Of a DNA stretch of 64,000 bases, positions 659-61,284 are shown one piece after another. Within the stretch, counting starts at the first letter, position 1; every line of letters begins with the position of its first letter. The DNA lies in the IMG/VR virus record IMGVR_UViG_3300036770_006296, positions 142,618 to 206,617 of that record; one strand, 5' to 3'. The notes beneath the pieces are model-generated. The model searched no databases and was not told where the DNA came from. It worked only from the letters and a program-made list of their open reading frames with translations. The position numbers were made by a program, and so were the translations under genes.

Positions 659-1054
659 TTATCTTAATTCGTAGTAATCTATTCCATTCGTTATCACCCC
701 ATAGATGTTGTCATCTATTATAAAATTATACGCTCTTCCTATTATAGATTCGGGAAGTCTTGAAAGATCTCTTTTAGAGACAAGAACCGCTATAGGCTTT
801 TCCCTCACGTATCCACTAGGACTCATTACTATCTCTCTATTTAATATTTTAGAAAATTGATTAACTGAAGCCATCGAAACAGATCCTGGATATTTCCATT
901 CCTCTTGGGATATTAAATAGGGATCAATTAAATCATCAATAGCAAAAATAAAAGGAGTTTTACCGGTTTTTGTAATCAGGTATTCTAGCTCACTTCTTGT
1001 TATAGGAGCAGGATCTTTCGTAAAGAAATTTTCAAATAATATTAAATTTTTCAT
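659..1054 (-). CDS. hypothetical protein with shared N-terminal motif (MKNLILFENF)
   Basis: ORF; N-terminal motif shared with many late proteins. Confidence 0.7.
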   Translation of the reverse strand: MKNLILFENFFTKDPAPITRSELEYLITKTGKTPFIFAIDDLIDPYLISQEEWKYPGSVSMASVNQFSKILNREIVMSPSGYVREKPIAVLVSKRDLSRLPESIIGRAYNFIIDDNIYGVITNGIDYYELR

Positions 1055-1058
1055 TTTT

Positions 1059-2654
1059 TCATTTCTTTAATTTCCAGCTTATTGCTCCAGCCCATGAGTC
1101 TTCCAGAGTTCTGAGATCGAAAGGAATAGTAATCTTTCCTGTTGCACTACCAGAAGTTCCCATTACTCTGTACGTCCCCCTTTGTCTATCTAAGTCGTGG
1201 ATTACTCCTTCGGAATTTCCTGAACTTACTCTATCCCCTATTTTTATGTAATCTAAATGTGGGTATTTAGAAGAGATTTCTTTCTCTGGCTCTTCCTCTA
1301 CAACTAGTAAAATTTTATTTATTTTATTTTTTAATATTTTCTCTAGATCTGCTCTTATTTCCACTTCTGGATCCTGGGATATTTTTTTCAATTCATTTGT
1401 AGCATAGTCAAGTACTGAGTTCAATAATATTTTTTTCTCGCCAGCATTAATAATTATTGGGGTTGGTTCTTTTAATAAATAACCTCCTGGTCTCCACATT
1501 CTTCTCTCTATGCTTTCCGCTGATGTTCCCTGCATATCTGCTACTGCATCTAAGAAAGATTTTTTAAGGAGATTAACTTTATATCTTTCGTCCGGCTCGT
1601 ATTTTTTACCGCTTGGTCCAAAATTGTATAGGGCGTAACAAAATATATTTTCATTTATTTTTTTTATTGATTCTTTGGCGATTTTAGAGAAGATGTCAGA
1701 TCCTTTTAATCTTTCCTCAGTTATATTTTTTGTTATGTCTACAATGCCTGATAGAATTTCAACTATTTTATTGGAGATATCTCTTAGGTCTACTCCTTGA
1801 TTTATATTATCGTCTATGATGATCATTTTTCCGAAGTTGCCAGCATTATCCCCTAATCCACAATGGTGTACAGCGCTTATAAATGCTTCTGTTGCTGTGT
1901 TATATTTTGGTCTTAGCGAGCTTCTTATTCCTCCCATTTCCCCGGAGGATCTTATTTCAAAGCTAGGATCTTTCCCTTCTTGTGCTTGTATTGATAGATT
2001 AGCTATCATTCCATCTATCCATGGCTCTACCCTTCGCATAGTGGGTGAATATCTAGGTTTCTCGTCTCCTTTTCTGTGTATTACTTTGCCAGTCCTTTTA
2101 TTGATTACATCTTTCTCGTAGTATCCTCTGGGTATATCAAGCTCTGATTCTATTTTTCTGTTATATGAATCCCAGTCTACAGCCTGCATAACATCTGTAT
2201 ATTTTATTTTTGGTATACTGATTACTGTAGCATTTGGATAGATATTTAAAAAAGATCCCTCCATTTTCTTAACAAGATCCCTGCTACTTCCTATGGTTAC
2301 TATGTAGTCTATATTTCCCTCTATATTATTTGTGAAGGTGTATCTAAAAAAATCCTCCAAGGTTTCACCAGGAGCCATCGAAAAACGGTCATCTTTTAAA
2401 GGATCCATTATAAATTTCTTAGCATTATCACCTTCCTCTGTGTCAGCAACATATGGAGTTCTTGGATAAAGACCAAAATATATTTTTATATTTGCTATAC
2501 CTCTTTCCGAAAAATTAAGATTGTTTGGATTTATTGTTTTTAGTAGCTCATTGGGGTTACTTGGATCGTTTTTTACAGATAAATATGTTTTCCCCTCACT
2601 ATCGTACCAAGCACCCTCGTTTATAAACTGTAGGAAATTTTTAAGATGATTCAT
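1059..2654 (-). CDS. hypothetical protein with N-terminal motif and PRTase-like PRPP loop
   Basis: MNHLKNFLQFINE start; MIIIDDNINQGVDL resembles hhhhDDhhxxG. Confidence 0.6.
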   Translation of the reverse strand: MNHLKNFLQFINEGAWYDSEGKTYLSVKNDPSNPNELLKTINPNNLNFSERGIANIKIYFGLYPRTPYVADTEEGDNAKKFIMDPLKDDRFSMAPGETLEDFFRYTFTNNIEGNIDYIVTIGSSRDLVKKMEGSFLNIYPNATVISIPKIKYTDVMQAVDWDSYNRKIESELDIPRGYYEKDVINKRTGKVIHRKGDEKPRYSPTMRRVEPWIDGMIANLSIQAQEGKDPSFEIRSSGEMGGIRSSLRPKYNTATEAFISAVHHCGLGDNAGNFGKMIIIDDNINQGVDLRDISNKIVEILSGIVDITKNITEERLKGSDIFSKIAKESIKKINENIFCYALYNFGPSGKKYEPDERYKVNLLKKSFLDAVADMQGTSAESIERRMWRPGGYLLKEPTPIIINAGEKKILLNSVLDYATNELKKISQDPEVEIRADLEKILKNKINKILLVVEEEPEKEISSKYPHLDYIKIGDRVSSGNSEGVIHDLDRQRGTYRVMGTSGSATGKITIPFDLRTLEDSWAGAISWKLKK

Positions 2655-2657
2655 CGG

Positions 2658-2694
2658 AATCTTTTTTTTATTTACTTTATAATCTCTACCTTTA
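2658..2694 (+). promoter_or_regulatory. class I (host-type) promoter AATC-T-run-...-TAnnTTT(G/A)
   Basis: AATC at 2658, TACCTTTA at 2687; same 29-nt offset as other copies. Confidence 0.55.
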
Positions 2695-2707
2695 CAAAAA
2701 ATAGAAT

Positions 2708-6972: not shown

Positions 6973-7173
6973 GTGAAAGATTTTTTAAAATATCTAGTGG
7001 TGTGGATAAGTGAGAACTTATCCATTCCTTTTTGGATAGTTGGACATATACATCTTACCATGAACATTTACGGGGATCTCTATGAGGTCCTTTGTTCTTT
7101 AGGGATGAATATTATTGTTGGTGCTGGTTTTTACCTATCTTATAAAGAATGGAAAAAGAATAAAGATATATAG
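6973..7173 (+). CDS. small membrane protein
   Basis: hydrophobic ORF; GATAAATA upstream. Confidence 0.55.
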   Translation: MKDFLKYLVVWISENLSIPFWIVGHIHLTMNIYGDLYEVLCSLGMNIIVGAGFYLSYKEWKKNKDI

Positions 7174-7193: not shown

Positions 7194-8798
7194 ATGAATT
7201 ACATAGAAACTTTCGAATCCTTCTACAACTTTGCTCCTAATGATGGAGGTGCTAACATTAACGAATTATTCTCTTTAAATCAGAGCTGTATGCCTAAATA
7301 TACATGCGAAGAATTCAAGAATTTATTTTCTTCCTATCTAAACGAGTCAGAAGAATATATGGATGATGATTCTTTAAATGAAGCTCACGCATACTACGAA
7401 ATCGCAATGCTTTCTGAAGCTAGATCTTCGTGGGGAGAAACCGAAGGGGATATTCATTATGTAGACGCAGAAACACACGTTATACTAGTTAAAAATTCAG
7501 AGGCTTTTATTATAGAAAAGAAAACTTTAGACTATGTACAGAATAACAATCTTAATGAGTTTAAAATGTTTTCGTTTAGTGATCTTAAAAAAGCATATCA
7601 CAAATTAAAGGATAAAGCTGTTGATTATGCTAAGAAAAAAATAAGCAACGCTAAGGAATTTGTTGCTAAGTCTTGGGATAAAATGTCAGATGGTGCTAAA
7701 AAAGCATGGGAATGGATGAAAACAGCAGTATCGGCCAGCGCTAAATTTGTAGGAGATAACTTAGAAACAATAACGATTGTTCTTACTGTACTTGGTTCAG
7801 TTTTAGGAATAGCTGGAGGACTTTTAACAGCAGTAGGAATAGGACCTATACTTACAGCAATTGCTGGGGGTATTATGGCTATAAATGGTGGTATACACAT
7901 ATATGAAGGATTCCATAAAATTCATCACGCAACTGAGATATCTAAGGATGTACCGGTAGATCCTATTGCTAAATTTGCGGCAGGTATGATTAAAGCTGGT
8001 CCTGATCTTTTCCTAGGATTATTATTTCTTCCTCTTGGATTTTATGATATAAGCCACGGATTAACAGAAGCACTAGCAAATCCAGCAGCAGGATCTATTG
8101 CCGCAGGGGTTAAAGAAACTGCTAAAGCTGCTTCAAAATCTTGGTTAGGAAATCTGGGCCACACTATAGAAAAAGTATTAGGTGGATTTCTTAAAAATTT
8201 CTTTGCTAATCCTAAAGTTGGCGCAGCAGTTGGCGCGGGTGTAGTCGGGGGAATTACAATCCTTGGTGCTAAATTCTTTACCGATGTTTGTGGGTGGCTT
8301 TATGAATTTATGCTTAAAAGTAGTGATTCGATACTTAAAGGAATAAATTGGCTTCTCGACATACCTAAAAAATTAACGGATGCGATTGATAAATTTTCTA
8401 AAGTTGCAGATGGATTTTTATCGAAGATAATAGCTAAAGGGTTAAGTGCTATAGTTAAGCCTATGACATCTTATTTAGCTAAAATATGTGAAAAATATTT
8501 TAAACCATTAGTTGATAAATCACGAAAATTTATACAAAGACAGATTGCTGCTAAAAAACTCTTAGATGCAGAAATGGAAAAAGCACACGGGGGTCATGGA
8601 AAAGGGGCGGACAATAAAAAACACGGAGAAATTCCAAAATCTAAAGGCAAGCCCTTATTTAAAATGGGAACTGTAGAGATTGAAAAAAAGGATGCCAAAT
8701 ATGCTTCTAAGGTAAATAAAGGAATTAAAAAAGTTAAAGAATCACAAGTCTGGGAAAATAAATATATTGGTTCTTTTGATGATTTAGAATTCATCTAG
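7194..8798 (+). CDS. putative virion-internal/membrane-inserting protein
   Basis: MNYIETFESF motif, GATATATA at 7165, central Gly/Ala-rich hydrophobic helices. Confidence 0.6.
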   Translation: MNYIETFESFYNFAPNDGGANINELFSLNQSCMPKYTCEEFKNLFSSYLNESEEYMDDDSLNEAHAYYEIAMLSEARSSWGETEGDIHYVDAETHVILVKNSEAFIIEKKTLDYVQNNNLNEFKMFSFSDLKKAYHKLKDKAVDYAKKKISNAKEFVAKSWDKMSDGAKKAWEWMKTAVSASAKFVGDNLETITIVLTVLGSVLGIAGGLLTAVGIGPILTAIAGGIMAINGGIHIYEGFHKIHHATEISKDVPVDPIAKFAAGMIKAGPDLFLGLLFLPLGFYDISHGLTEALANPAAGSIAAGVKETAKAASKSWLGNLGHTIEKVLGGFLKNFFANPKVGAAVGAGVVGGITILGAKFFTDVCGWLYEFMLKSSDSILKGINWLLDIPKKLTDAIDKFSKVADGFLSKIIAKGLSAIVKPMTSYLAKICEKYFKPLVDKSRKFIQRQIAAKKLLDAEMEKAHGGHGKGADNKKHGEIPKSKGKPLFKMGTVEIEKKDAKYASKVNKGIKKVKESQVWENKYIGSFDDLEFI

Positions 8799-8870: not shown

Positions 8871-9077
8871 ATGATAGCATATACAATTTCTGTCATCTTA
8901 TTTACCCTTATAATAGCATCTGGAATTTTCTTTTGGGTAGTATCGATGTTTACTGGAAAGGTAGAAAAGCCAATTCTATCCCTAATAGGATATGTATTTT
9001 GGCCAATAAGTCTTGTTTTTATATGGATTTATGCCTATTTTTACAATAAATACCAGAAGGGAAGAAAGGATATATAA
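8871..9077 (+). CDS. small membrane protein
   Basis: two hydrophobic segments. Confidence 0.55.
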   Translation: MIAYTISVILFTLIIASGIFFWVVSMFTGKVEKPILSLIGYVFWPISLVFIWIYAYFYNKYQKGRKDI

Positions 9078-9081: not shown

Positions 9082-9765
9082 ATGAAGAGGATAAAACTTT
9101 TTGAAAATTTTGACAATGAAGGGAAGTACTTATGGCCTGAAGCGGCGCTGTGGATAGAAGAACTTCATCCAGAAGAAATATGTTTTTTAGCTCTTTATGT
9201 TTCAATTGTAGAATACAACAAAAATCTTCCCTATAACAGAAGTACAGAAGATCTGCTTTTTCCTATAAAAACCGATTATAAAAGTTATGAATTAGAACCG
9301 GATTCTTATGACGATGAAGATGGAATTTCTAATTTTGAACTCTATTATGAAATACCATCAAAGAACAAAGAAAATTGTATATTTTCTATTGATGTTACAG
9401 GCAAAGGACATTTCACCCAAATTAGAAGAGGTGGATATATGGAGCCAGACGAAGGGGGTGAACCTATCCTTGATTCAATAGAATTTGATTCTGCTTACTA
9501 TTTAGATTCCAAAGAGGAGACGGAAATAAATTTTTCTGATAACTCTTATATTTTTAAATCTGACATTCTAACAAAAAAAGATCTAACTAACATAATAGAG
9601 TATGCCGCAGCTCAAAGAATAGAAGCTGATGATAATACGGATACTCATAAGCCTTTTATTCCACAAAGATTAATGGACAAGTGTCAAGAAATTAGAAAGA
9701 ATCATCCGGATTCAGTAAAAGGTGGTAATTTGCTGAACAGATTTGGAATTTTGGGAACAAACTAG
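9082..9765 (+). CDS. hypothetical late protein (MKRIKLFENF...KGGNLLNRFGI)
   Basis: start reassigned to ATG 9082 just after GATATATA at 9069. Confidence 0.7.
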   Translation: MKRIKLFENFDNEGKYLWPEAALWIEELHPEEICFLALYVSIVEYNKNLPYNRSTEDLLFPIKTDYKSYELEPDSYDDEDGISNFELYYEIPSKNKENCIFSIDVTGKGHFTQIRRGGYMEPDEGGEPILDSIEFDSAYYLDSKEETEINFSDNSYIFKSDILTKKDLTNIIEYAAAQRIEADDNTDTHKPFIPQRLMDKCQEIRKNHPDSVKGGNLLNRFGILGTN

Positions 9766-9799: not shown

Positions 9800-10057
9800 A
9801 TGAAAAATATATTTTTAGCTCTATCTTTATTTGTTTCTTTATTATCTTTTTCGCAAGATTATAAATTCAACAAATTATCTGTTGTTTCCCCTAATAGGGA
9901 TACTCTCTGGCTTCTAAATGACCCGTCGGGAAGGCTAATTGCTTATTCTTGGGAGCTAGAACAAAATCTACCTGAGAAAAAACCAGTAATTATTCTTGTT
10001 GAATCATTACCAACTATCGAGAAAAAAAAGAAAAAAGGATATATAGAAGGTAATTAA
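9800..10057 (+). CDS. secreted hypothetical protein
   Basis: signal peptide ending SFS-Q (Bacteroidota-style). Confidence 0.6.
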   Translation: MKNIFLALSLFVSLLSFSQDYKFNKLSVVSPNRDTLWLLNDPSGRLIAYSWELEQNLPEKKPVIILVESLPTIEKKKKKGYIEGN

Positions 10058-10065: not shown

Positions 10066-10458
10066 ATGAGACATATACGATTATTTGAAAATTTCGACCA
10101 GGATAAAACAGTAGACTCATCTGGATTATTATTTGATTGGATTCCCTTTGATACGGAAGTTAATAATCCAATTAATTCTTCAGTCCCTACAGAAATAACT
10201 CCACAGAAACTTATAGAGTATTGCAACGCTAATCCGGAGATAGGTAAAGTAGGTTTGTATATTGCGCATAAAAAAAATCCTGCTGGGGGATTTACTAGAT
10301 ATGTAACCACTTCAACAAATCCTTTGTTATTAGAATCGGCAATGTTTGATAGCGAGTTTAACAAGATTAATGATGTGAAAGGAATAAGTGCAGCATCTCT
10401 TGATTCATTTGGGAAGGGAGCTTCAATGATGAACAGATTCGGATTATTCGACAAGTAA
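10066..10458 (+). CDS. hypothetical late protein (MRHIRLFENF...KGASMMNRFGL)
   Basis: GATATATA at 10038; shared N- and C-terminal motifs. Confidence 0.7.
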   Translation: MRHIRLFENFDQDKTVDSSGLLFDWIPFDTEVNNPINSSVPTEITPQKLIEYCNANPEIGKVGLYIAHKKNPAGGFTRYVTTSTNPLLLESAMFDSEFNKINDVKGISAASLDSFGKGASMMNRFGLFDK

Positions 10459-12628: not shown

Positions 12629-12943
12629 TTATTTCATCTGGTTGTATATTTTTTGCAAATCCCCAACAATCCAGTCTTCGGGGTATCCATCATCTTTAGA
12701 ATTTTCTATAGCATCACTTATTATTGAGATGTATTTATACTCCTCGCTTCTACGATTAAATTTAGGAGTGTTTTCTTGACCATTATAGTAGTTTAGTATA
12801 TCTTTGATTGTGGATTTTAAAACATAAAGATCCGCGCCAAGTTCTATAGCTTTATTTATTTTTTTAGAAATAGCTGTGTAAGGATCTTCTGATCCTGGAT
12901 GGAATTCGTATAATTTTAAAAATTCTTTGTATTTAGTTAGCAT
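12629..12943 (-). CDS. hypothetical protein, paralog of 12945-13301
   Basis: MLTKYKEFLKLYEFHPG. Confidence 0.65.
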   Translation of the reverse strand: MLTKYKEFLKLYEFHPGSEDPYTAISKKINKAIELGADLYVLKSTIKDILNYYNGQENTPKFNRRSEEYKYISIISDAIENSKDDGYPEDWIVGDLQKIYNQMK

Positions 12944-12944: not shown

Positions 12945-13301
12945 TTAAAATGAGTATTCTTTTATAATATTCTCTATCTCCTTCATTATTAGATCCTCGT
13001 CGTACCAATCTTCCTCAGCTAATATAAATTTTTGTCTTAGTGAATTTATGGCGGAGTTTAAGTCCGTTCCTATAGAAATACCTTTTTTTTCTTTAAAATC
13101 CATAATGTCTCTGTCACTATAAGCTGTTGCTTTATTTATTTTATAAAAATCTAAATAGAAAGATAAAGCCTCCATAATAACTGGTATAGTAAATCCTCCA
13201 TCCATCAATTTTTTTATACCTTCTCGTATCATATCTTGGACAGGAATAGCACCGGGGTGATGTTCATTTATTGACAAGAAATCCTTGTATTTTTTTATCA
13301 T
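12945..13301 (-). CDS. hypothetical late protein, paralog of 12629-12943
   Basis: MIKKYKDFLSINEHHPG; GATATATA (-) at 13306-13313. Confidence 0.65.
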   Translation of the reverse strand: MIKKYKDFLSINEHHPGAIPVQDMIREGIKKLMDGGFTIPVIMEALSFYLDFYKINKATAYSDRDIMDFKEKKGISIGTDLNSAINSLRQKFILAEEDWYDEDLIMKEIENIIKEYSF

Positions 13302-13357: not shown

Positions 13358-14338
13358 ATGGTAAAGAAAAAAGGACCTATCAGTATGTTTATAGAAAGAA
13401 ACTATAAACACTTTAATGCAGCAGCTCTAAAAGATGCTGCTATAGGATATGAAACACACATCGACGGTGGAGGAAAAATGCTGGTCTCTCTTGCTGGTGC
13501 AATGAGCACAGCAGAACTTGGTATTTCTCTTGCTGAAATGATTAGAGCTGGTAAAGTTGATATTATTTCTTGTACTGGTGCCAACCTAGAAGAAGATCTC
13601 ATGAATCTTGTAGCACATTCACATTACAAGAGAATACCTAATTACAGAGATCTTACCCCAAAAGAGGAGCGTGATTTATTAGACAATGGACTTAATAGAG
13701 TTACAGATACTTGCATTCCGGAGGAAGAAGCATTCAGAAGACTACAGAATCACATATATGATATATGGAAAAAAGCAGAAAGCAGAGGAGAAAGACACTT
13801 TCCACACAAATACATGTACGAATTAATAAATAGCGGAGTGTTAGAGCAGTACTATGAAATTGATCCTAAGGATTCATGGATGGTTGCAGCAGCAGAGGTG
13901 AATTTACCTATGGTTGTTCCAGGGTGGGAAGATTCCACCTTAGGAAACATCTTTGCTTCGTATGTAATAAAAGGTGACTTGAAGCACGACACTGTAAAAA
14001 ACGGGATAGAGTATATGGTTTCTTTAAGCCATTGGTACAGGGAAAATTGTCAAGAGCCAGGAATAGGATTCTTCCAGATAGGTGGGGGAATTGCCGGGGA
14101 TTTTCCTATCTGTGTTGTACCTATGATGTACCAAGATCTTGAATGGGAGGATGTACCATTTTGGTCTTATTTCTGTCAAATTTCGGATTCAACAACATCT
14201 TATGGTTCTTATTCAGGAGCAGTACCAAATGAAAAGATTACTTGGGGCAAATTGGACGCAGACACCCCTAAATTTATTGTAGAATCGGATGCCACAATAG
14301 TTGCTCCCCTGATTTTTTCATGGATATTAAATAAATAG
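13358..14338 (+). CDS. deoxyhypusine synthase-like protein (homospermidine-forming DHS family)
   Basis: LAGAMSTAELG, TGANLEED, GGGIAGDF, YSGAVPNEKITWGK, SDATIVAPL. Confidence 0.92.
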   Translation: MVKKKGPISMFIERNYKHFNAAALKDAAIGYETHIDGGGKMLVSLAGAMSTAELGISLAEMIRAGKVDIISCTGANLEEDLMNLVAHSHYKRIPNYRDLTPKEERDLLDNGLNRVTDTCIPEEEAFRRLQNHIYDIWKKAESRGERHFPHKYMYELINSGVLEQYYEIDPKDSWMVAAAEVNLPMVVPGWEDSTLGNIFASYVIKGDLKHDTVKNGIEYMVSLSHWYRENCQEPGIGFFQIGGGIAGDFPICVVPMMYQDLEWEDVPFWSYFCQISDSTTSYGSYSGAVPNEKITWGKLDADTPKFIVESDATIVAPLIFSWILNK

Positions 14339-14356: not shown

Positions 14357-15166
14357 ATGAAAGAGATATACGGCCTATTGATATTCTCTATAGTTATTTT
14401 ATTAGCAGGCTATATCAACATAAAAAAAGAAAAAATGAAGCATCTTAAAAGTATAGATGAATTTAAAATAGCAAATGAACAGCTTTTTTCTGACGCTAAT
14501 AAATTTTCTAAGCTCTTCGGATTAGATTCACCATCTAAAGACTCAAGTGATAATAAAGATTCATCTTCAGGAGGGACAGATTCTTCTGGAGCATCCTCAT
14601 CAATTTCTGCCAAAACAGAACTTGGTAATTATGGTAAATTTAGTGAAGCATCTAAGAAAAATGCTCCTCTAATTATGGTTTATGGAGGTATAGATGTAGG
14701 AGGCAAAAAGAGTGGAGAATATATGTATGACTATTTAGGAAAAATAGGAAGCTCCGCTAATATTTTTGTGGCAAAGGATCACAAAGTAGATGGCAAAGGA
14801 TCATACAAAGCAGTCAAAGATAAATTGTCTGAAAAATCGATATCGCCTTCTAAAAAAATATTATATCTTTTTTCTGGAGGATATAAACCAGGAATGGAAT
14901 TATTAAATAGTGTTTCGGCTTCAGAGTTCGACTTAATATATCTAGTTGATATTTGGATGGGTAATTCAAAAGTTGCTTCCTTTTATAAAAATTTAGCAGA
15001 GAATAATAGAGGTAAGGTTAGGTATTTTTATAGCGGAGACGGAGCTCAAAATGCAGATGCAAAAAACAGTTTAATTAAAACTCTGAACTTCTACAAGTCA
15101 AATGATCAAAACAATCATATGGCAACAAACACAGATGCCGTCTCTGATCTATCAAATAAATTATAA
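14357..15166 (+). CDS. putative hydrolase with NEQLF leader (alternative start 14435)
   Basis: MKHLKSIDEFKIANEQLF at 14435; LYLFSGG nucleophile-elbow-like motif. Confidence 0.55.
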   Translation: MKEIYGLLIFSIVILLAGYINIKKEKMKHLKSIDEFKIANEQLFSDANKFSKLFGLDSPSKDSSDNKDSSSGGTDSSGASSSISAKTELGNYGKFSEASKKNAPLIMVYGGIDVGGKKSGEYMYDYLGKIGSSANIFVAKDHKVDGKGSYKAVKDKLSEKSISPSKKILYLFSGGYKPGMELLNSVSASEFDLIYLVDIWMGNSKVASFYKNLAENNRGKVRYFYSGDGAQNADAKNSLIKTLNFYKSNDQNNHMATNTDAVSDLSNKL

Positions 15167-15167: not shown

Positions 15168-15944
15168 ATGAAACACATAAAGAACATACAAGAATTTAAT
15201 CACCTTTATGAACAGTTATTTGCTGCTGATATTGCAAAATTTAACAAATTGATGGGTATATCAGTGGAAGAAACCGGTATGGAGGAACCAAATATATCTC
15301 CTGCTGAAAATCCTTCTGGTTCAGGGTCAGCCTTTGCTTCTGTTGTTAAACTTAACACCAGTCAGTTAGATGAATATGGATCAACTGTTGGGATTAGTGA
15401 AAAAGGAGATAATGCTCCATTACAGCAGCCAGCAAGAGGGCCTTTAGGAAATATAGTAAATTCAGCTTATGCTAACTTAAATGTTTCAACTAGAAAAATA
15501 CCAGGGACTCTCGGAGGTAATTTAGGTTGTGCAGCAGCAGTTTCCATTATATTTTATAGAGCTACTGGATACGCAATAGCTGGTTCTGGAGCTATCACAC
15601 TAGGCACCGCTCACATGTGGAACCATTTTGAAAAAGAAAGCAGAAATCCCAGCGGAGTTTGGCAGAAAATAACTAATTGGAAGACTGACTCACAGCCTGG
15701 AGATATAATATTAACATCTAGAGGGTCTAAAGCAGGACACGTGGGTGTTGTTGTAGAGGGAGGTAACATTATATCAAATTCTTCTGGAGGATTCCAAGGA
15801 GATAAAAAAGGACAGATCGAGCTAAACTATAATCTAAACACATGGCAAAGTGTTGCTAATAGAAATCCACAGCAAACTGCTTCTTTTAGATATAAAGGAC
15901 CCTATAAAAACACCTGGGGTAAAACGGAAAAACCAGTAGCATAG
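15168..15944 (+). CDS. NlpC/P60-CHAP-like peptidoglycan amidase
   Basis: LGCAAAVS catalytic Cys, QPGDII, GHVGVV His; MKHIKNIQEF leader. Confidence 0.7.
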   Translation: MKHIKNIQEFNHLYEQLFAADIAKFNKLMGISVEETGMEEPNISPAENPSGSGSAFASVVKLNTSQLDEYGSTVGISEKGDNAPLQQPARGPLGNIVNSAYANLNVSTRKIPGTLGGNLGCAAAVSIIFYRATGYAIAGSGAITLGTAHMWNHFEKESRNPSGVWQKITNWKTDSQPGDIILTSRGSKAGHVGVVVEGGNIISNSSGGFQGDKKGQIELNYNLNTWQSVANRNPQQTASFRYKGPYKNTWGKTEKPVA

Positions 15945-25855: not shown

Positions 25856-26457
25856 AAAAAATATTTTTAATTATTATCCTATTGGGGATAAGGGGATTTT
25901 GCTTTTCTCAAAACTTTTATCCGATACAAACAATTTTAAAAGGAGATTCTGTTGTTATATACACGCTAGAACAGTCTCAAGATATAAATCTAATGATACA
26001 GAATCAAAAATCATTAAATGTAAGCTATAAGAGCAAATATGAGCACTATCTAGGAAAAACAGACAGTTTAGAAAAAATAGTAGCTGCGCAACTGTACTTG
26101 ATTGATAGCTTAAGATTAGTTCAAAAAAATCAAGATAGCTTGGAAAAAAAATTACACACAATAGAAAGTTGGTTAGTAAAAGCATCAATCGATAACTCTT
26201 ACCTCTATATGTCATGGCAGGATTCTAAAATTAAATCGGTGGACCTAACATTATATACTGTTCATTGCAGTATGCAAACAGGAACGATAAGAATGGTTAG
26301 GAGAGGTCCTAATGATGAATTTTATACCTGGAAAGGAATAAACCACACAAGAAGAGAAAGCCCCTCCATTAACTGGGAATTAAAATATCCAGAGGAAGAT
26401 AGGCCGATAGTTAATAATTTACCAGTAGATATCAAAATAAGTCAATATGTAAGATGA
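25852..26457 (+). CDS. secreted coiled-coil protein in two-component operon
   Basis: signal peptide, coupled start/stop with both kinases. Confidence 0.65.
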   Translation: MKKIFLIIILLGIRGFCFSQNFYPIQTILKGDSVVIYTLEQSQDINLMIQNQKSLNVSYKSKYEHYLGKTDSLEKIVAAQLYLIDSLRLVQKNQDSLEKKLHTIESWLVKASIDNSYLYMSWQDSKIKSVDLTLYTVHCSMQTGTIRMVRRGPNDEFYTWKGINHTRRESPSINWELKYPEEDRPIVNNLPVDIKISQYVR

Positions 26458-27893: not shown

Positions 27894-27894
27894 A

Positions 27895-28326
27895 ATGATT
27901 AATTCTATACTATTAGTTGATGATGAGGATTTATTCCACTTAGTTTTTGAAGATGCCTGCAGTCTTTTGGATATAACACTTTCTCTTGAAAGTCTAACTT
28001 CTGCTGATGAAGCAGAGAAACTGTTTAAAGCATGGCACAAAGAAGCCGATGGAAAACCTGAGTGTGTGTTTGTAGATCTTAATATAATAGGTTCTTCTTT
28101 CGATGGCATAGAGCTAATAAGAAAAATAAATTTTGAATACGGTAATCATGTTGTTATCGGTATTATCTCCTCATCAAACGAACCAGAGGAACAATCAAAA
28201 GCTTTACAGGCCGGAGCTCAGTTTTGGATAATAAAATCCGACGACATAGAACCTAGGTTAGAGGATTTTAAAAAAGATTATGAGGGATATAAAAACAGAA
28301 CAAATTCGTTCAAGGTTTATAAATAG
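27895..28326 (+). CDS. single-domain response regulator (receiver only)
   Basis: ILLVDDED, VFVDLNI phospho-Asp, IISSS, IIK. Confidence 0.9.
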   Translation: MINSILLVDDEDLFHLVFEDACSLLDITLSLESLTSADEAEKLFKAWHKEADGKPECVFVDLNIIGSSFDGIELIRKINFEYGNHVVIGIISSSNEPEEQSKALQAGAQFWIIKSDDIEPRLEDFKKDYEGYKNRTNSFKVYK

Positions 28327-31089: not shown

Positions 31090-31151
31090 ATCTGCTAATT
31101 TAATAAATAAATTAAAAAGCAAAAGGATATATAAAGATAATAGAGACAAAA

Positions 31152-44202: not shown

Positions 44203-44466
44203 ATGACGGAAAGAGAACTACAACTTTTAGGATTTGAGCAAAAAGTCCAAAATGACCCAGATTGGGGAATTTATCACTATTACACCTATGAAGTAACTAA
44301 AGGATTAGATTTTATATCTAATGCTAGTGATGAAATTAAGGAAGGTGAAGAATGGTACGTAGAATTTTTTGAATCCACACCAGCTATCAGATTTTATGGC
44401 TTTGGTGAGGTTCAAGCATTAATAAATCTTTTAGAAAAACATAAAATAAATGAACAACCTGGATAA
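44203..44466 (+). CDS. hypothetical protein
   Basis: ORF in operon. Confidence 0.55.
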   Translation: MTERELQLLGFEQKVQNDPDWGIYHYYTYEVTKGLDFISNASDEIKEGEEWYVEFFESTPAIRFYGFGEVQALINLLEKHKINEQPG

Positions 44467-45664
44467 AGATTATCAGGATCTACTAAGAGACATAATTAGT
44501 AGTGGAGTTGTAAAACAGGATCGTACCGGCACTGGAACATTATCTGTTTTTGGTAGACAAATAAGACATAAAATGTCAGACGGATTTCCGTTACTCACCA
44601 CAAAGAAAATGTATTGGAAGGGAATTGTAACCGAACTACTATGGTTCTTACGGGGAGATACGAACATTAAGTTTCTAGTTGACAATGACTGTCATATTTG
44701 GAATGGTGATGCGTATAAAAGATTTACGTACTATACGGACGAGGAAACCTCAATGGAAAGATTTATAGAACTTATTAAAACAGATGATGAGTTTGCTAAG
44801 AAGTGGGGTGATTTAGGCCCCGTGTATGGTAAGCAATGGAGAGATTGGGGTGGTAAAGAAATAAAGGTAATAGATGGAAAAGTAATGACAGTAATAAACG
44901 ATCAAATCCAAAACCTAATCAATGACCTTAAAACAAACCCAGACTCAAGACGATTAATGGTTTCAGCTTGGAATGTAGGTGAATTAGACCAAATGGTTCT
45001 TCCACCTTGTCATTATGGATTTCAAGTTTACACAAGAGATTTAACTTTAGAAGAAAGAAGAAAACTCGTTAGCCCTGATATGTTTAATCAGATTTATAAC
45101 GGAGGCGGACCTGAATCGTTATCTAATTCTGAAATAAATCAATGGAATGTTCCAACTAAAGCGATATCTCTGATGTGGAACCAGCGTTCTGTTGACGTTT
45201 TTTTAGGACTTCCTTTTAATATAGCTTCCTATGGATTACTTCTGGAAATCATTGCTAAGGAGGTTAATATGATTCCTGATGAGTTGATTGGTAACTTAGG
45301 TGATACGCATTTGTATTTTAATCACATTGATCAGGCGAAAGAGCAGATCGGTAAAAAATACACACCACAGGAAAGAGAATCAATGCTCAAGGATGCAATG
45401 AGCTGGCGTAAATATAATAAAGCATTAAATGAGTTAGCTCCTTTTGGTGGAGGTATGAGCGAATATTACGAGACACATAAGATTCCAAAAACTACAAGGG
45501 ATCCTTATCCTCTCCCTAAGTTAAATTTCAATATGGAATGGTGGGATGAGCCTTTTATGCAAGCAGTTATGTCTGAAGCTTTCTGTAAGTGTTTGATAGA
45601 AGAAGATATACAGCTTGCTGGGTATCAATCACATCCAACTATTAAAGCACCACTAAATAATTAA
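44450..45664 (+). CDS. thyA: thymidylate synthase
   Basis: DRTGTGT, FPLLTTKK, ELLWFL.G, LGPVYG.QWR, LPPCH, QRSVD.FLGLPFNIASY, GDTHLY. Confidence 0.96.
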   Translation: MNNLDKDYQDLLRDIISSGVVKQDRTGTGTLSVFGRQIRHKMSDGFPLLTTKKMYWKGIVTELLWFLRGDTNIKFLVDNDCHIWNGDAYKRFTYYTDEETSMERFIELIKTDDEFAKKWGDLGPVYGKQWRDWGGKEIKVIDGKVMTVINDQIQNLINDLKTNPDSRRLMVSAWNVGELDQMVLPPCHYGFQVYTRDLTLEERRKLVSPDMFNQIYNGGGPESLSNSEINQWNVPTKAISLMWNQRSVDVFLGLPFNIASYGLLLEIIAKEVNMIPDELIGNLGDTHLYFNHIDQAKEQIGKKYTPQERESMLKDAMSWRKYNKALNELAPFGGGMSEYYETHKIPKTTRDPYPLPKLNFNMEWWDEPFMQAVMSEAFCKCLIEEDIQLAGYQSHPTIKAPLNN

Positions 45665-51762: not shown

Positions 51763-52020
51763 ATGAAACACATTAAGATCTACGAAAATTTTAGTTCATC
51801 TGCGGATAGAAAATATTTTACTGACGCAGAAATCCAATACTACCAAAAATTATGGGATTGGCTTCCGGAGAGATACAGATACAATCAGTTTTTCTTAAAG
51901 CTTTGGACACAAGCAACAACTAAGAAGTATCTTTCTAATAAACAGTGGATCCAACTGGAGTATTTACTAAAAAATGGTAAATCCCAATATGAGGCGGGAA
52001 TTCTTCCTAGTAATTATTGA
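51763..52020 (+). CDS. hypothetical late protein (MKHIKIYENF)
   Basis: GAATATATA at 51749; start reassigned. Confidence 0.65.
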   Translation: MKHIKIYENFSSSADRKYFTDAEIQYYQKLWDWLPERYRYNQFFLKLWTQATTKKYLSNKQWIQLEYLLKNGKSQYEAGILPSNY

Positions 52021-53987: not shown

Positions 53988-55613
53988 ATGTCAAAGTTGA
54001 GTAATTACGCAGATAAAAAAGTAGCAATGCAAATTGCACATAATTCACTCTATGGAGCTTTTGCAGTGGAGAACTTTATGGGAGGAACATCCTATGAGAT
54101 CAATCCATTAGACACATTAAGGATTGTAGCGGCTTCCTCTATATTCGGAGAACCCCAATATTACCGTGACGGTTTAAAAGCACCTAGTAATCTTAGCACT
54201 CTTTCTAGATACTCTATATTTTCCTCGATGTATAAATCGGATTTAACATCGGTTGAAATTTTCGAAAATGCGATAGACTCTGCCCTTGACTATGACTTTA
54301 AAGGTACCCTAGATCTTGCTTTAGAATTAAGAAATAAATTCTTCATGAGACTTAATCCTGCGGTTATCTTCATAAGAGCATCGCAGCACAGTAACAGAAC
54401 AGAGTTTAATGAAGCTAACCCTGGATACATGAAAAATGTGGGTAAGTCTATCTCACTTAGACCTGATGATTTAACAAATCAATTTGAGTACTATATGTAC
54501 AAGAATGGGGGTAAAAAAGGCCTTTCGTCTTTAGTTAAAAGAACATGGGCAGAAAAACTTGGTGAATTTAGCAGATATCAATTAAATAAGTACAAAGGAA
54601 AAAGACTAATAGATCTTGTACGTATATCTCACGCAAAAGGAGAGGACATTAATGAGTTAATGTCCACCGGTACATTAAAAGTAAAAGAGACCGAAAAAAC
54701 CTGGGAAACTCTAAGATCTGAAGGAAAAACATGGAAGGAAATAGCGGATACAATTCTTATCCCTCATATGGCTTTATTAAGAAACCTTAGAGGTATATTT
54801 ACTGAGGTAGAAGATCGTACAATCACAGCGAGAATCTTAACTCAATTAAAATCTGGGGTTGAAAGTGGAAAACAATTTCCGTTTAGATATTGGTCAGCTT
54901 TTAAGGCGGTACAAAATTCAGATATACATCACAAGCAACTCGTTCTTGATACTCTAGAGGAGTGCTTAGATATTTCGGTAGCTAATATGCCTAAATTAAA
55001 GGGGAAAACTGCCTGTCTATCCGATAACTCAGGATCAGCATGGGGTTCTTTCAATAGCGAATATGGATCGGTAACTGTTGCAGAAATAGCTAACCTTTCA
55101 TCATTGACAACTGCTTTACAATCCGATGAAGGTATTGTAGGAGTATTTGGCGATAATCTTTCATTAAAAGAAGTCTCTAAAAGAAACGGTATACTCACTC
55201 AATTAGAAGAGACCTCTGAAAGAGGAAGATCTCAAGGAGGTGGAACGGAAAATGGGATATGGGTATTCTGGGACGAAGCTATAAAAAATAAAGTCCATTA
55301 CGATAACGTTTTTATCTACTCGGATATGCAGGCTGGACACGGCGGACTATATGGCCACAGCAATACAGTAGGAAGTTCTCCTTATGGACATAGCGGTAAA
55401 GGTGATGTCCATGTAGATGTACTGGCAATGGTACAAGAATACAGAAGAACTGTTAATCCCAAGGTTAATGTTTTTACTGTTCAAGTTGCAGGATACAACA
55501 ACACGGTTTTACCCGAAAATCTTTATAGAGGTGCTATATTAGCCGGATGGACAGGAAAAGAGCCACTATTTGCTAAAGCCATAATCGAAGCTTGGGATTC
55601 TATAGAATCTTAA
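53988..55613 (+). CDS. TROVE/Ro60 ribonucleoprotein (TROVE + vWA)
   Basis: NFMGG.SY, YQLNKYK, DLVRISH, TWE, MALLRNLR, QFPFRY..A, vWA DNSGS...YSDMQ. Confidence 0.92.
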   Translation: MSKLSNYADKKVAMQIAHNSLYGAFAVENFMGGTSYEINPLDTLRIVAASSIFGEPQYYRDGLKAPSNLSTLSRYSIFSSMYKSDLTSVEIFENAIDSALDYDFKGTLDLALELRNKFFMRLNPAVIFIRASQHSNRTEFNEANPGYMKNVGKSISLRPDDLTNQFEYYMYKNGGKKGLSSLVKRTWAEKLGEFSRYQLNKYKGKRLIDLVRISHAKGEDINELMSTGTLKVKETEKTWETLRSEGKTWKEIADTILIPHMALLRNLRGIFTEVEDRTITARILTQLKSGVESGKQFPFRYWSAFKAVQNSDIHHKQLVLDTLEECLDISVANMPKLKGKTACLSDNSGSAWGSFNSEYGSVTVAEIANLSSLTTALQSDEGIVGVFGDNLSLKEVSKRNGILTQLEETSERGRSQGGGTENGIWVFWDEAIKNKVHYDNVFIYSDMQAGHGGLYGHSNTVGSSPYGHSGKGDVHVDVLAMVQEYRRTVNPKVNVFTVQVAGYNNTVLPENLYRGAILAGWTGKEPLFAKAIIEAWDSIES

Positions 55614-55659: not shown

Positions 55660-55693
55660 GTGGTTTTTTTCTACAAATAGGATAAATACTTAT

Positions 55694-55945
55694 ATGAAAA
55701 TAATAAAAACATACGAGAACTATAATGTTATAGACATGGGAAGGAACGAACCAGTAAAAAAATACGGCGAGCCTTATCCACTAACTAATCTTAAGAAGGG
55801 TGATAAAGTAACATACTTAGGTACTCCTTTTATCGTAGACAAAGTAGACGAGTATACATTATTATTAAAATCTGCGGAAGATGGATCTGCTTTAAGAGTA
55901 AATCAAAACATGTTTAATCAGAGAGGATTTATTGGACCTATTTAA
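55694..55945 (+). CDS. hypothetical late protein (MKIIKTYENY)
   Basis: GATAAATA at 55681; start reassigned. Confidence 0.65.
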   Translation: MKIIKTYENYNVIDMGRNEPVKKYGEPYPLTNLKKGDKVTYLGTPFIVDKVDEYTLLLKSAEDGSALRVNQNMFNQRGFIGPI

Positions 55946-56285: not shown

Positions 56286-56308
56286 AAAGGATATATAAAA
56301 TAAAAAAA

Positions 56309-56701
56309 ATGAAACACCTTAGAATATACGAAAGCTTCGCTAGAGAAGTAGAAATGGATCAGGTCATGCCAGACACTGATATGGATCCAATGTCAAGTGA
56401 TATGGGAATGGAAATGGAAAATGGTAGCTTCGAAGCAGAATCTACAGATTTCGTTTCAACTCCAGAAGGACAAGAAGGTGATTATATAGTAAAATTTATT
56501 AATCCAGAGGGAGAGGAAGTAACAGTTACAGTAGGGCACGCAATAGACCCTGAGTACATGGGGAAGAAAATGATTAGTGCTATAGAAATGATACCAGATT
56601 CAAGCTCAGACGGTAGACAATATTCATTTATAGGATACTATGACGAAATCCCTGGATCCGCTGGAGCTTATGAACTTAAGAGGGTTTTAATTGAGGGATA
56701 A
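56309..56701 (+). CDS. acidic late protein (MKHLRIYESF)
   Basis: GATATATA at 56290. Confidence 0.65.
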   Translation: MKHLRIYESFAREVEMDQVMPDTDMDPMSSDMGMEMENGSFEAESTDFVSTPEGQEGDYIVKFINPEGEEVTVTVGHAIDPEYMGKKMISAIEMIPDSSSDGRQYSFIGYYDEIPGSAGAYELKRVLIEG

Positions 56702-57000: not shown

Positions 57001-57930
57001 ATGAAAAAAATACTAGATTTCAAAGAATTTTCTTTATTCGAAAATGAAATTTCGGATGGTAAATCAAACATCTTTGATTTCAATAATAAATTAATTTATA
57101 GGACACTAAAAGATATAAAGACAACAACCATAGGGGGAAGAGAATATAACTTTCTATGCGTTGGTAGCGGAATGAAAACCTATGCAGATTCTGTTGCCAA
57201 GTCCAATAAAAAAATAGGAGACGTTCTACTAAAAATCGCTGAAAAGAAAGATAAATCTTTAGTTTTTACCCCTGATGGAATATACGTAGTTTCTGAGGCA
57301 GTTTCAGACGGATTAATGTCTTTAACATCATCTATTTTTTCGTATGTAAAAGAGGGTGAGATAACAGCGGGATTAAGTGTTATTTATACTTTTAAAAGAA
57401 TCAATACATATTATACAGATAAGGGAGAAGAGGCTTTTAGTAATATGAAAGAAGACCCTGCTGCTTTGTTTAAAATGATCATCAAAGATCTTTATAAACT
57501 AGCAGATAAATCACCAAATGCTTCAGAAGCAGTATCTATATTAACTGTTGGCGCATATAAAGCATCAACATCATCCTTTAAAACAATCCCGGAATTTTTA
57601 AATTCGTGTCTATATGAAACAGCTAAAGAATTAGGAATAAAATCTGTAAACATAGGACAAAACATAGAAGATTTCTATAAGGTTTGCCAAAACACGCTAG
57701 ACAATTTAAAAGTACCAGTTAACAAAACTATAGAGGAGGGAGTAGAGAAAATGTCTCAGATGATAGATAAGGGTATAAGAAAAGGAAGAATATTCGGAGC
57801 TAGATTAGAAAAAGAAACACAGGATGCTCTCAAAGCAGTACAAGATAGAATAGCACCAACAGGAAAAGCGATAGCTACAAAAAGCAAAAATATCTGGAAT
57901 TCAATTTCCGGAAAAAAAGTAACTAATTAA
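57001..57930 (+). CDS. hypothetical protein (MKKILDFKEFSLFENE)
   Basis: N-terminal motif. Confidence 0.65.
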   Translation: MKKILDFKEFSLFENEISDGKSNIFDFNNKLIYRTLKDIKTTTIGGREYNFLCVGSGMKTYADSVAKSNKKIGDVLLKIAEKKDKSLVFTPDGIYVVSEAVSDGLMSLTSSIFSYVKEGEITAGLSVIYTFKRINTYYTDKGEEAFSNMKEDPAALFKMIIKDLYKLADKSPNASEAVSILTVGAYKASTSSFKTIPEFLNSCLYETAKELGIKSVNIGQNIEDFYKVCQNTLDNLKVPVNKTIEEGVEKMSQMIDKGIRKGRIFGARLEKETQDALKAVQDRIAPTGKAIATKSKNIWNSISGKKVTN

Positions 57931-58737: not shown

Positions 58738-58751
58738 CTGAATTAAAATAT

Positions 58752-59444: not shown

Positions 59445-59560
59445 CCTATAAAGGTGTAGAAACTATAACATGGACGGAAGAAAATGCAGATACTATTTGT
59501 AATTTTCTAAAACATAATAGACTTGTATCATTTTATGGATATATAGAATAAAGTCAAAAA

Positions 59561-60946
59561 ATGAGACCAAGCAGAGTACTAAACTTTGATAGTTATACCA
59601 AATTATTTGAGCAGGAGTCTTCTACACCAGTTAAAACAATCAGCGAGATAATATCTCTCTTTTTTAAATGTTACATGTTTGTAGCTACTAAAGCAGTAGA
59701 TTATAAAGATGTACTTGCCGATTTGATATCTGTATCAGAAGAAAAAGATCCAGCTAAAAGATCCGAAACAATGGAATCTGTTATTAAAAAAGTAGCAGAG
59801 AAAATAGATCCAAAATATGCTACAATAAAAGAAGATGCTATTAAAGCAGCAACTTCTATCAAAGAAATCTATGCTCAAGTTGCTTCAGCAGAAGATGCTA
59901 AAAAGAACGCAGATGCAATTAATAAAATGGTTACTAGTAAAATAGTAAACTATCAAGATATTCTTAAAAATGAGCCTTTAAAAGAGCACGCAAATGTATA
60001 TGGGTTTGATCAATATTCATTCCCTTTACTTTACGAGAAAAATACATTCGATGACGAAAGAGCAGCTCTTACAGATAAAATGAAATCTTTGTATTCTGAA
60101 ATGATTTCACAGAAAAAAAATCCTAGCAGTGCAACATTAAAAGCTAAAGCCGATGAGGTTGTATCTAAGTTTGATGAGTATCAAAAATTACTCTCTGATA
60201 AAGGGGCTTGGGAAAAAATGAAGAGGAAGGAAAGGAAGGAAAAATTAGAGACGATGAATGCTGAGATTGATGATATGATTCAAAAAGCCAATCAGCTTCA
60301 AAAATCTGAATTAGCCAAGATCGGGGTAGACAAGAAAATAGCAGATACTATGTCAAATATTATCACTAGTATAAATTCTATGTCTGATAAAGCTAAAGCT
60401 ATTGACGATAAAGCAATTGCTGACGCTAAGGATGCCGAAGAAAAAAAGAATCAAGAAAAGGTAGAGTATAAAGCTGGTGACATTGTTAAATATAAGAAGG
60501 ATAACGGTGAAGAAGCACAGAGCGAGATAGTTAAAATAGAGGGGGACAAAGTTTACTTTAAAGATAAGGACGGAAAAGAATTTTCTAAGGACAAAAAAGA
60601 CCTTACGGGAAAAGTAGAAGGGAAAGAAGAAGATAAAGACAAAGGTAAGGATATTAGCAGTGGTAATGTAGACAAGAAAAATCTAAAAAAAGATGGTCCT
60701 AATGTTGAAGCAATTAAGAAATTCCAAGAAGACTATAACAATTTAGGAATAGGAAAAAAATTAACGGCTGACGGATTATACGGAAAAAATACAGAAATCG
60801 CTGTTGATAAAGTTGCTAAGATGATTAAAAACATATCTGGAAAAGATATTAATACCGACGGAGGTAAAAAACTTACTGGAGATCTTCAGGATAATCTTAA
60901 AAAATTACTAGCTAATAAGGATAAGATTAAAGAAATCCTCGGATAA
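59561..60946 (+). CDS. late helical protein with C-terminal PG-binding-like motif
   Basis: GATATATA at 59538; FDSYTKLFEQE motif; LTADGLYGKNT. Confidence 0.6.
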   Translation: MRPSRVLNFDSYTKLFEQESSTPVKTISEIISLFFKCYMFVATKAVDYKDVLADLISVSEEKDPAKRSETMESVIKKVAEKIDPKYATIKEDAIKAATSIKEIYAQVASAEDAKKNADAINKMVTSKIVNYQDILKNEPLKEHANVYGFDQYSFPLLYEKNTFDDERAALTDKMKSLYSEMISQKKNPSSATLKAKADEVVSKFDEYQKLLSDKGAWEKMKRKERKEKLETMNAEIDDMIQKANQLQKSELAKIGVDKKIADTMSNIITSINSMSDKAKAIDDKAIADAKDAEEKKNQEKVEYKAGDIVKYKKDNGEEAQSEIVKIEGDKVYFKDKDGKEFSKDKKDLTGKVEGKEEDKDKGKDISSGNVDKKNLKKDGPNVEAIKKFQEDYNNLGIGKKLTADGLYGKNTEIAVDKVAKMIKNISGKDINTDGGKKLTGDLQDNLKKLLANKDKIKEILG

Positions 60947-60999
60947 AAAAATTAACAGTTCTAATACAATAGGAGCTGGAATTTTAAAAAAATGAAAAA

Positions 61000-61284
61000 A
61001 TGAAACATATATTCGAATTTGAATCATTCTCAGAAAAAGTAAATGAGGGATTCTGGAATTCTCTTTTTGGTGGACCAACAGTTGATGACGCAGCTCATGA
61101 TTCTATGAGAGGACAAGGATTTAGCCACAGAGGTAAAGATAAGGATGAACAAAACTACATCGTGTTCCAAGGACAAAAATTCTATCCTGATCAAATTCAA
61201 TATGATGATGTTTATTCAACTAAACCTATCCCAAGAATAGAAAATGGAATTCTTATAGTTGCTAATCCGGCTTGGAATTTATAA
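61000..61284 (+). CDS. hypothetical protein (MKHIFEFESFSEKVNE)
   Basis: N-terminal motif. Confidence 0.65.
   Translation: MKHIFEFESFSEKVNEGFWNSLFGGPTVDDAAHDSMRGQGFSHRGKDKDEQNYIVFQGQKFYPDQIQYDDVYSTKPIPRIENGILIVANPAWNL

Follow-up and report, generated by a model that had tools for sequence, protein, structure and literature searches.

An N-terminal peptide shared by about sixty proteins of an uncultivated large phage is a candidate capsid-targeting propeptide of the T4 type

Introduction

The capsid-targeting sequence (CTS) of phage T4 is MKTYQEFIAE (PMC8442874). Mutational work summarised in PMC9026906 assigns targeting to its residues 4 and 7 and processing to residues 8 and 10, and the protease gp21 cuts after L/I-x-E (PMC9026906). 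In the T4 record, the internal proteins IPII and IPIII begin with MKTYQEFIAE followed by A, and IPI begins with MKTFKEF and has a later I-T-E followed by A. Here we analyze a 64,000-nucleotide stretch of DNA (the window), which is the final 64 kb of the 206,617-bp IMG/VR virus contig IMGVR_UViG_3300036770_006296 (35% G+C, 306 called genes), and a peptide, hereafter the tag, that begins 19 of its proteins. An earlier reading made from the letters of the window (the sequence-only reading) had proposed that this N-terminus is a capsid-targeting and processing signal like that of T4. All of the sequence-level predictions of the proposal that we tested were borne out, and we think it likely that the tag is a propeptide that targets proteins to the capsid in the manner of the T4 internal proteins. 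The proteins that carry it, a large set, are probably packed into the head and injected into the host, and the tag would thus represent a greatly expanded new form of the T4 targeting and processing system, in widespread uncultivated large phages.

The four residues mapped in T4 coincide, at the same spacing, with the skeleton of the tag (an aromatic residue, Ar, at position 7, F10, [ILV] at position 11 and E13), in agreement with the T4-like targeting and cleavage pattern that had been proposed. As with the T4 CTS, the putative propeptide comprises ~10-13 residues directly after the Met of otherwise unrelated proteins, and two aromatic residues three apart are followed by [IL]-x-E and then by a small residue; a protease of the gp21 family, T4-type portal and capsid genes, and the apparently late timing of the tagged genes are further likenesses. 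The tag differs from the T4 CTS in having three extra N-terminal residues (K-H/Y-I) and a preference for N in the middle of the cleavage triplet. There are also about 60 tagged genes in 206 kb, compared with three in T4; unlike the T4 internal proteins, the tagged proteins are not basic, reach 718 aa and include enzymes; and the protease of related phages, unlike T4 gp21, is fused to a scaffold-like region of ~400 aa. The function of the present tag is a prediction from sequence.

Short terminal peptides also address diverse cargo into the HK97-fold shells of encapsulins; these cargo-loading peptides, as a rule C-terminal, attach directly to the shell protein and stay on. Here the likeness lies in the manner of working only: the present tag is N-terminal, and no membership is claimed. 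The Dar antirestriction proteins of phage P1 are incorporated into the capsid and injected, and they counter host defence; they are packaged via specific partner proteins and not by a common short motif, whereas the present set, which would likewise be packed in the head and injected, shares one. Propeptides of the phiKZ type are long and heterogeneous, and we know of no report of a universal N-terminal address peptide for the head proteins of these phages. Like the present phage as we read it, phiKZ, 201phi2-1 and SPN3US are jumbo phages with many head-packed proteins, matured by cleavage after Glu by the gp21 homologues gp175/gp245 (PMC9026906). The cleavage motif in this group is S/A-x-E (PMC9026906), which was rejected for the tag because position 11 (P3) is I/V/L; a single short tag common to all cargo is the second difference. 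No earlier description of the tag was found in the full-text literature with peptide strings or with huge phages combined with 'capsid targeting', and the word 'N-terminal' is absent from PMC12619734, a 2025 paper on large aquatic Bacteroidota phages.

A 13-residue tag at the start of unrelated proteins

All 16 N-termini quoted in the sequence-only reading translate exactly as written at their coordinates and strands. Four of these starts (9082, 14435, 15168 and, on the minus strand, 32322) are preceded by an earlier ATG in their open frame; paralogues and orthologues begin at the tag. The reading had counted about 19 tagged proteins, and 19 tagged coding sequences are indeed present in the window, listed here with sites of the promoter element treated below; h-x-E denotes a triplet of a hydrophobic residue, any residue and Glu.

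659-1054, minus strand: g196, 131 aa, MKNLILFENF; in an operon behind g197, without h-x-E within 30 residues
1059-2654, minus strand: g197, 531 aa, MNHLKNFLQFINE followed by G; full Ar-x-x-F-I-N-E form, only a weak Pfam NttE match
7194-8798, plus strand: g208, 534 aa, MNYIETFESF; paralogue of g066 and g067 with a transmembrane (TM)-like segment, GATATATA at 7165-7172
9082-9765, plus strand: g210, 227 aa, MKRIKLFENF; GGATATATA at 9069-9076, 13 nt before the ATG
10066-10458, plus strand: g212, 130 aa, MRHIRLFENF; promoter at 10038-10045
12629-12943, minus strand: g218, 104 aa, MLTKYKEFLKLYE followed by F; short T4-like form
12945-13301, minus strand: g219, 118 aa, MIKKYKDFLSINE followed by H; promoter at 13313-13306
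14435-15166, plus strand: g221, 243 aa, MKHLKSIDEF...NEQLF; a 30-residue leader in common with g183, g222 and g248
15168-15944, plus strand: g222, 258 aa, MKHIKNIQEFNHLYE followed by Q; CHAP peptidoglycan peptidase domain
31152-31979, plus strand: g248, 275 aa, MRHLKSLEEFRIVNE followed by Q; GH19-type wall hydrolase, promoter at 31126-31133
31981-32322, minus strand: g249, 113 aa, MNYIELYENF
33010-33582, minus strand: g251, 190 aa, MKHISDFNAF; promoter at 33596-33589
33598-34320, minus strand: g252, 240 aa, MKYISYFKEL, a degenerate form; promoter at 34333-34326
51763-52020, plus strand: g290, 85 aa, MKHIKIYENF; a GAATATATA variant upstream
55694-55945, plus strand: g295, 83 aa, MKIIKTYENY; GGATAAATA at 55681-55688
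56309-56701, plus strand: g298, 130 aa, MKHLRIYESF, then an acidic, Met-rich linker; promoter at 56290-56297
57001-57930, plus strand: g300, 309 aa, MKKILDFKEFSLFE followed by N
59561-60946, plus strand: g302, 461 aa, MRPSRVLNFDSYTKLFE followed by Q, an offset form; promoter at 59538-59545
61000-61284, plus strand: g303, 94 aa, MKHIFEFESFSE followed by K

The core of the motif stood as first described. Its extent did not: the tag continues to [ILV]-N-E and then A/S, and manual curation of the whole contig gave about 60 tagged genes among the 306 called, about a fifth, and not 19. The description of the proteins as unrelated also held, since the 60 tagged proteins, less their first 25 residues, fall into 56 BLAST families. 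A strict regular expression matches the 206,617-bp contig 22 times, always at or close to the start of an open reading frame (ORF), and the pattern derived from the window also recovers new cases in the remaining 142 kb and in other genomes. With a position matrix, trained on the same data as it scored, 46 proteins reach 10 bits or more N-terminally, compared with 6 internal matches in about five times as many positions; 29 matches lie at offset 1, as do 21 of 23 in the 462-kb 'huge phage' record LR756500. When residues 2-30 were shuffled, 0.74 proteins matched on average (maximum 4); with residues 2-13 shuffled, the figure was 0.125 matches as against 30 observed.

The full consensus of 13 residues is MK[HY]IK[LT][FY]E.F[IVL]NE, then A/S, with the most information at position 7 (F/Y, 3.05 bits) and position 10 (F, 3.35 bits). 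Substitutions within the tag are K/R, H/Y, I/L and F/Y. Synonymous codons at the conserved positions (K, H, I, F and E) are used in roughly their genome-wide proportions; because they vary freely, what is under selection is the peptide rather than the RNA. An h-x-E triplet with its E at residues 11-24 (peak 12-15) was found in 47 of the 60 tagged proteins, compared with 78 of the 246 other proteins of the contig (p = 6e-11), and one contig protein begins MIQHYEEFIAE. Tagged genes are clustered, with 19 adjacent pairs where 11.6 were expected. Among the genes in common with LR756500 are 4 of the 60 tagged and 41 of the 246 untagged genes (p = 0.065), a depletion that is a trend only.

IMG/VR was then scanned with a degenerate DNA pattern that fixes residues 1-5, 7, 8 and 10 only and leaves positions 11-13 free. 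More than 119 stretches matched. Among the matches listed, contigs range from 5 to 482 kb and several carry arrays of tagged genes, up to 12 in 9 kb; of the 147 unique N-termini in this listed set, 84 (57%) have [ILVMF]-x-E at positions 11-13, the background elsewhere in the same 147 proteins being 2.3% per position. Position 11 is I in 42, V in 36 and L in 19 of these 147 N-termini, and the residue after the triplet is A in 27, S in 16, K in 14 and G in 7.

Structural modelling of one tagged protein, the wall hydrolase g248, suggests how the tag is attached. In its AlphaFold (AF2) model, residues 1-52 are of low confidence and form two short helices and a disordered linker, and the catalytic domain, residues 53-270, has a mean pLDDT of 85-96 per 10-residue block; as modelled, the tag of g248 would be a loose helix on a disordered linker, detached from the fold. 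Across 120 orthologues of g248, down to 47% identity, K5, F10, N14, E15 and Q16 are 88-95% conserved and the linker 23-65%.

Some neighbouring sequences depart from the canonical form. The C-terminal end of g066 carries a tag-like NYIRTFESFSFS just before its tagged paralogue g067 (genome 58505-60712), which looks like a relic of tandem duplication. Eight tandem paralogues, all beginning MTREEFI..L, lie upstream of tagged g097 (genome 77253-81444). The paralogues g018 and g019 (genome 21257-23251) begin with MKAKIT.V.IQ... and then six glycines in place of the tag; their homologue in LR756500 (w289) has a canonical tag and 240 extra residues, and the glycine-bearing start could be a second kind of leader.

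The tag is found in viruses and not in cells

The same DNA pattern was applied to 596 Gb of bacterial and archaeal genomes, where it matched only 40 stretches, most of them either spurious short frames or members of an unrelated 52-aa family of Methanobrevibacter; h-x-E at positions 11-13 is present in only 2 of 41 cellular matches. The matches that look genuine lie on large contigs in Bacteroidetes-type metagenome-assembled genomes (MAGs) and look like mis-binned phage. The tag is therefore essentially absent from these cellular genomes, as a virus-specific distribution requires, and because they hold almost no genuine instances it is a viral signal and no copy of a host sorting signal. For the same reason, and because the consensus alternates charged and aromatic residues, a Sec, Tat or lipoprotein signal peptide was rejected.

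Among phage genomes, LR756500 has about 45 tagged genes. In a complete 256-kb genome (G015) there are about 30, and 15 small ones follow one another without interruption, recalling the variable loci for internal proteins in T-even phages. The tag is also present in a 50-kb sample of LR756504; none was found in a small 50-kb sample of the Prevotella phage Lak-A2, whose genetic code is possibly different. Short ORFs (21-80 aa) in Bacteroidales and Flavisolibacter MAGs begin with MKHIK.FE.F, then ..INI.SN[IV]P; they could form a small conserved family of peptides with no relation to the phage tag.

A tagged gene adjoins the head protease gene

A T4-type signal calls for a protease of the gp21 family. 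Of 16 large contigs with the tag, most of which are fragments, 10 have a match to Pfam Peptidase_S77 (PF03420) that exceeds the cut-off, and one more has a match below it; the protease is present in 4 of 5 complete or nearly complete ones. In these relatives the S77 domain always lies in a frame of 500-730 aa, the N-terminus keeps LLI-x-E as in T4 gp21, and the ~400 residues after the domain are rich in h-x-E (27 triplets in 632 residues). As such triplets are expected of a scaffold that is degraded, the region after the protease is probably scaffold-like. T4-type head genes accompany the protease, with portal, protease-scaffold and gp23-like major capsid protein genes in a row in LR756500 and in G015. 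The gp23-like capsid proteins (LR756500 w310, G015 v069) begin M..LINE and then AEI; this L-I-N-E followed by A is a tag-like triplet at residues 4-7 and could be a very short propeptide.

In G015, the one locus mapped in full, a 130-aa tagged protein is encoded between portal and protease, the position of the T4 genes for the prohead core, 67 and 68. An IMG/VR search with the protease-scaffold alignment confirmed 559 relatives, from which 80 loci were kept and 79 were usable. Directly upstream of the protease gene, 61 of the 79 loci have an ORF of 90-150 aa; among the 51 unique proteins that these encode, which are very acidic (median pI 4.1), 45 or more begin with the tag, typically as MKIIKTFE[DE]FI[SA]E and then [DE]A. 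The acidic tagged proteins at this place are 110-130 aa long. In 3 further loci a larger tagged gene occupies this place. The upstream protein resembles T4 gp67 and gp68 in being small and very acidic and in the place of its gene, which immediately precedes that of the protease and in G015 has the portal gene on its other side; it differs in that no sequence similarity to them is detectable and in that T4 gp67 and gp68 do not start with a CTS of the internal-protein type. Because a tagged gene adjoins the protease in most loci, the tag belongs to a conserved head-morphogenesis module and not to accessory genes only.

Contigs that overlap the 3' end of the present contig and belong to the same phage encode two T4-type portals (PF07230), gp2-like and gp55-like proteins, terminase, sheath and tubes. 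The portals are tandem paralogues of 537 and 546 aa (L173:14554-17814), each with 43-45% identity to the portal of LR756500, and the late promoter precedes the first of them.

Tagged genes have a late promoter in common with virion genes

The sequence-only reading held that most tagged genes follow a GATA(T/A)ATA promoter. In the window this is true by a small margin (11 of 19); across the contig the association is strong. GATA[TA]ATA occurs 73 times in the contig, and 53 of these occurrences lie 8-70 nt upstream of a start on the same strand, spacings of 12-13 and 25-30 nt being favoured. These occurrences serve 52 genes, 33 of them tagged (odds ratio 14.6, p = 4.5e-15). The GATATATA promoter is common to tagged genes, the portal paralogue, baseplate, fibre and other virion-module genes, and because the same element precedes the portal paralogue, baseplate and fibre genes it behaves as a late promoter. 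Late co-expression of tagged and virion genes, as had been predicted, is thus suggested by the common promoter. The late promoter of T4 is TATAAATA, and that of the present phage would plausibly be read by a gp55-like factor. A 118-aa gp55-like factor (L173:13117-13473) and a full-length sigma-70-type factor with regions 2 and 4 (L173:5714-6337) are candidate readers of the GATATATA promoter.

The promoter and the tag do not coincide throughout. Portal, sheath, tube, baseplate, fibres, terminase, polymerase, helicases, ribonucleotide reductase (RNR) and ThyA are all without the tag, which agrees with the expectation that tail and replication proteins are untagged, as are all recognisable replication and nucleotide-metabolism enzymes. 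Since structural proteins with the same promoter lack it, the tag is unlikely to be a general expression signal.

Tagged cargo

Most tagged proteins belong to no recognisable family. Among the exceptions, g248 is a wall hydrolase of the GH19 type (phrog_181, 5e-19; Foldseek matches to the endolysins of SPN1S, KTN6 and other GH19 endolysins), and g222 matches Pfam CHAP above the cut-off (3.4e-6) as well as endolysins and tail lysins in PHROG. Further tagged cargo includes an OmpA-like wall-binding protein and a weak match to PG_binding_1. The GH19 hydrolase, the CHAP peptidase and the OmpA-like protein have no signal peptide, and for wall-active enzymes this lack of an export signal is consistent with arrival at the envelope by way of the tail. 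Two AAA ATPases of the MoxR type each lie near a DUF2201 metallopeptidase-like protein, and all four are tagged. A tagged family of 530-720 aa has membrane-like segments; TM-like segments were found in only 4 of the 60 tagged proteins.

Proposed mechanism

We propose that the tagged proteins are made late from the phage-specific GATATATA promoter, alongside head and tail proteins. The tag would form a short amphipathic N-terminal helix, with aromatic residues three apart, that docks the cargo on the scaffolding core of the prohead. A T4 gp21-family (S77) protease would then cut after [ILV]-x-E behind the second aromatic residue, freeing the mature protein inside the head, from which it would be ejected into the host with the DNA. 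More broadly, the tag could be a universal address label across hundreds of lineages of uncultivated aquatic phages (~100-640 kb) with T4-type heads, an extension that we advance tentatively.

Were this so, the injected protein arsenal of these phages could be read directly from sequence, and about one gene in five of the present phage would encode cargo of the head that enters the host as soon as infection begins. This cargo would comprise wall hydrolases, AAA+ chaperone/metallopeptidase pairs, membrane-spanning proteins of 700 aa and dozens of fast-evolving unknowns, a repertoire several-fold more diverse than that of any studied phage. Injected proteins are known for only a handful of cultured phages, usually via virion mass spectrometry; if the tag works as in T4, the internal and injected proteins of a widespread group of uncultivated jumbo phages could be listed from sequence, which would also point to candidate anti-defence and host-takeover effectors. 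The T4 capsid-targeting principle would then extend far outside the enterobacterial T-even phages and prove able to handle dozens of different cargo proteins, and phages of predicted Bacteroidota hosts could be engineered with a natural packaging tag of 13 residues.

Several observations weigh against packaging and processing of the T4 type. The contig is without a head module: neither a protease nor capsid genes of the phage's own were found in its 206.6 kb with the S77 and Gp23 Pfam models or by tblastn with the relatives' head proteins, and they are likewise absent from the 51.6-kb 3' extension and from ~27 kb of an 81%-identical 5' relative. In 13 loci (one subclade) and in LR756500 the portal gene is immediately next to the protease gene, and no tagged gene separates them. 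The expectation of small, basic cargo like the T4 internal proteins failed, as the tagged proteins have a median pI of 5.7, the same as the rest of the proteome, and a median length of 216 aa (maximum 718 aa), some being large (500-718 aa). Thirteen of the 60 have no h-x-E with its E at residues 11-24. The two MoxR ATPases and the two DUF2201 metallopeptidases are enzymes expected in the cytoplasm. Sixty cargo species would be unprecedented, far beyond known cases, and no cultured phage was found with any of the tagged families that were tried.

Alternative explanations

Some of these observations would be accommodated if the tag were a docking peptide, perhaps uncleaved, for another late assembly or hub; this might be a scaffold on which the tail or baseplate is built, an assembly factory in the cytoplasm or the MoxR AAA+ chaperones that the phage encodes. 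The late promoter is common to tail genes, the MoxR ATPases and their DUF2201 partners are themselves tagged, and the cargo is not basic and in some cases very large. A docking peptide of this kind would leave unexplained the conserved [ILV]-x-E and then A/S right behind the aromatic pair, the match to the T4 determinants and the tagged gene directly upstream of the protease in most loci, and the tail, baseplate and fibre proteins are themselves without the tag; we regard it as unlikely.

The clustering of tagged genes, the 15-gene array of G015 and the relic copy at the C-terminal end of g066, just before g067, would suit an ancestral N-terminal module that spread by duplication or domain shuffling and was kept for folding or oligomerisation, with no common address function. 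Such a history accords poorly with 56 unrelated families behind one 13-residue peptide, with a tag that is modelled as a detached helix on a disordered linker outside the fold, and with its stronger constraint than that of the adjoining linker across orthologues down to 47% identity, and it is distinctly improbable.

We regard as very unlikely an export or membrane-targeting signal, for instance for wall-active enzymes, that would use a secretion route of the host or the phage. Three or four tagged proteins do have peptidoglycan-related domains and the helix is amphipathic, but the tag has charged residues all along it and no hydrophobic core, a TM-like segment is found in only 4 of 60 proteins, most cargo has no envelope-related domain, and the near-absence of the tag from the 596 Gb of bacterial and archaeal genomes makes it unlike any common host sorting signal.

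Conservation at the level of nucleic acid, as a translation-initiation enhancer or promoter-proximal cassette in an AT-rich genome without Shine-Dalgarno sequences, would fit the AT-rich consensus codons and the position of the tag directly after the promoter in many genes, but it is largely refuted by synonymous positions that vary as they do genome-wide under conservative amino-acid replacements. The result of the composition-keeping residue shuffles (0.125 against 30) and highly expressed late structural genes that have the same promoter and no tag also speak against it, and its probability is close to nil.

Source contig, relatives and host

CheckV puts the completeness of the contig at 81%. 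The contig is extended at the 3' end by overlapping contigs (99.96-100% identity), which contribute 51.6 kb or more and still do not close the genome; this part, from the same phage, holds recombination genes, terminase, sheath, tubes, sigma factors and the two portals. On the 5' side, ~27 kb more from the 81%-identical relative encodes neck, baseplate and giant fibres. Because at least 51.6 kb (3', same phage) and at least 27 kb (5', relative) lie beyond its ends, the CheckV value is an overestimate, and the genome is probably ~290 kb or larger.

Judged by DNA polymerase, the public records closest to the phage are those of uncultured 'huge phages', with LR756500 at 41% identity, LR7565xx/LR745206 at 33-35% and the Prevotella Lak phages at ~30%. 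The phage has a cosmopolitan distribution, with near-identical sequence in 18 or more metagenome runs. These come from 11 studies and cover freshwater, subsurface, drinking-water, river and estuary samples. In RNA runs, only 6-9% of the sampled words were present. The host probably belongs to the Bacteroidota, because signal peptides are of the Bacteroidota style and large tag-bearing contigs are binned with Bacteroidetes and Cytophagales MAGs. PMC12619734 predicts Bacteroidota hosts for its own lineage of large aquatic phages and notes the same for the Lak phages, a statement that covers those two groups.

Other genes of the window include a deoxyhypusine synthase homologue (window 13358-14338; Pfam DS, 5.7e-40) and a thymidylate synthase of 404 aa (window 44450-45664) whose Pfam match falls in two stretches, suggesting a large insertion. 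A 541-aa protein with a TROVE (Ro-like) domain (window 53988-55613) may have a role in RNA binding or RNA quality control. The region 24089-28326 of the window encodes two sensor histidine kinases, of which one contains GAF and PAS domains, and the N-terminus of a small protein after them resembles the receiver domain of response regulators, which together would make up a phage-borne two-component system.

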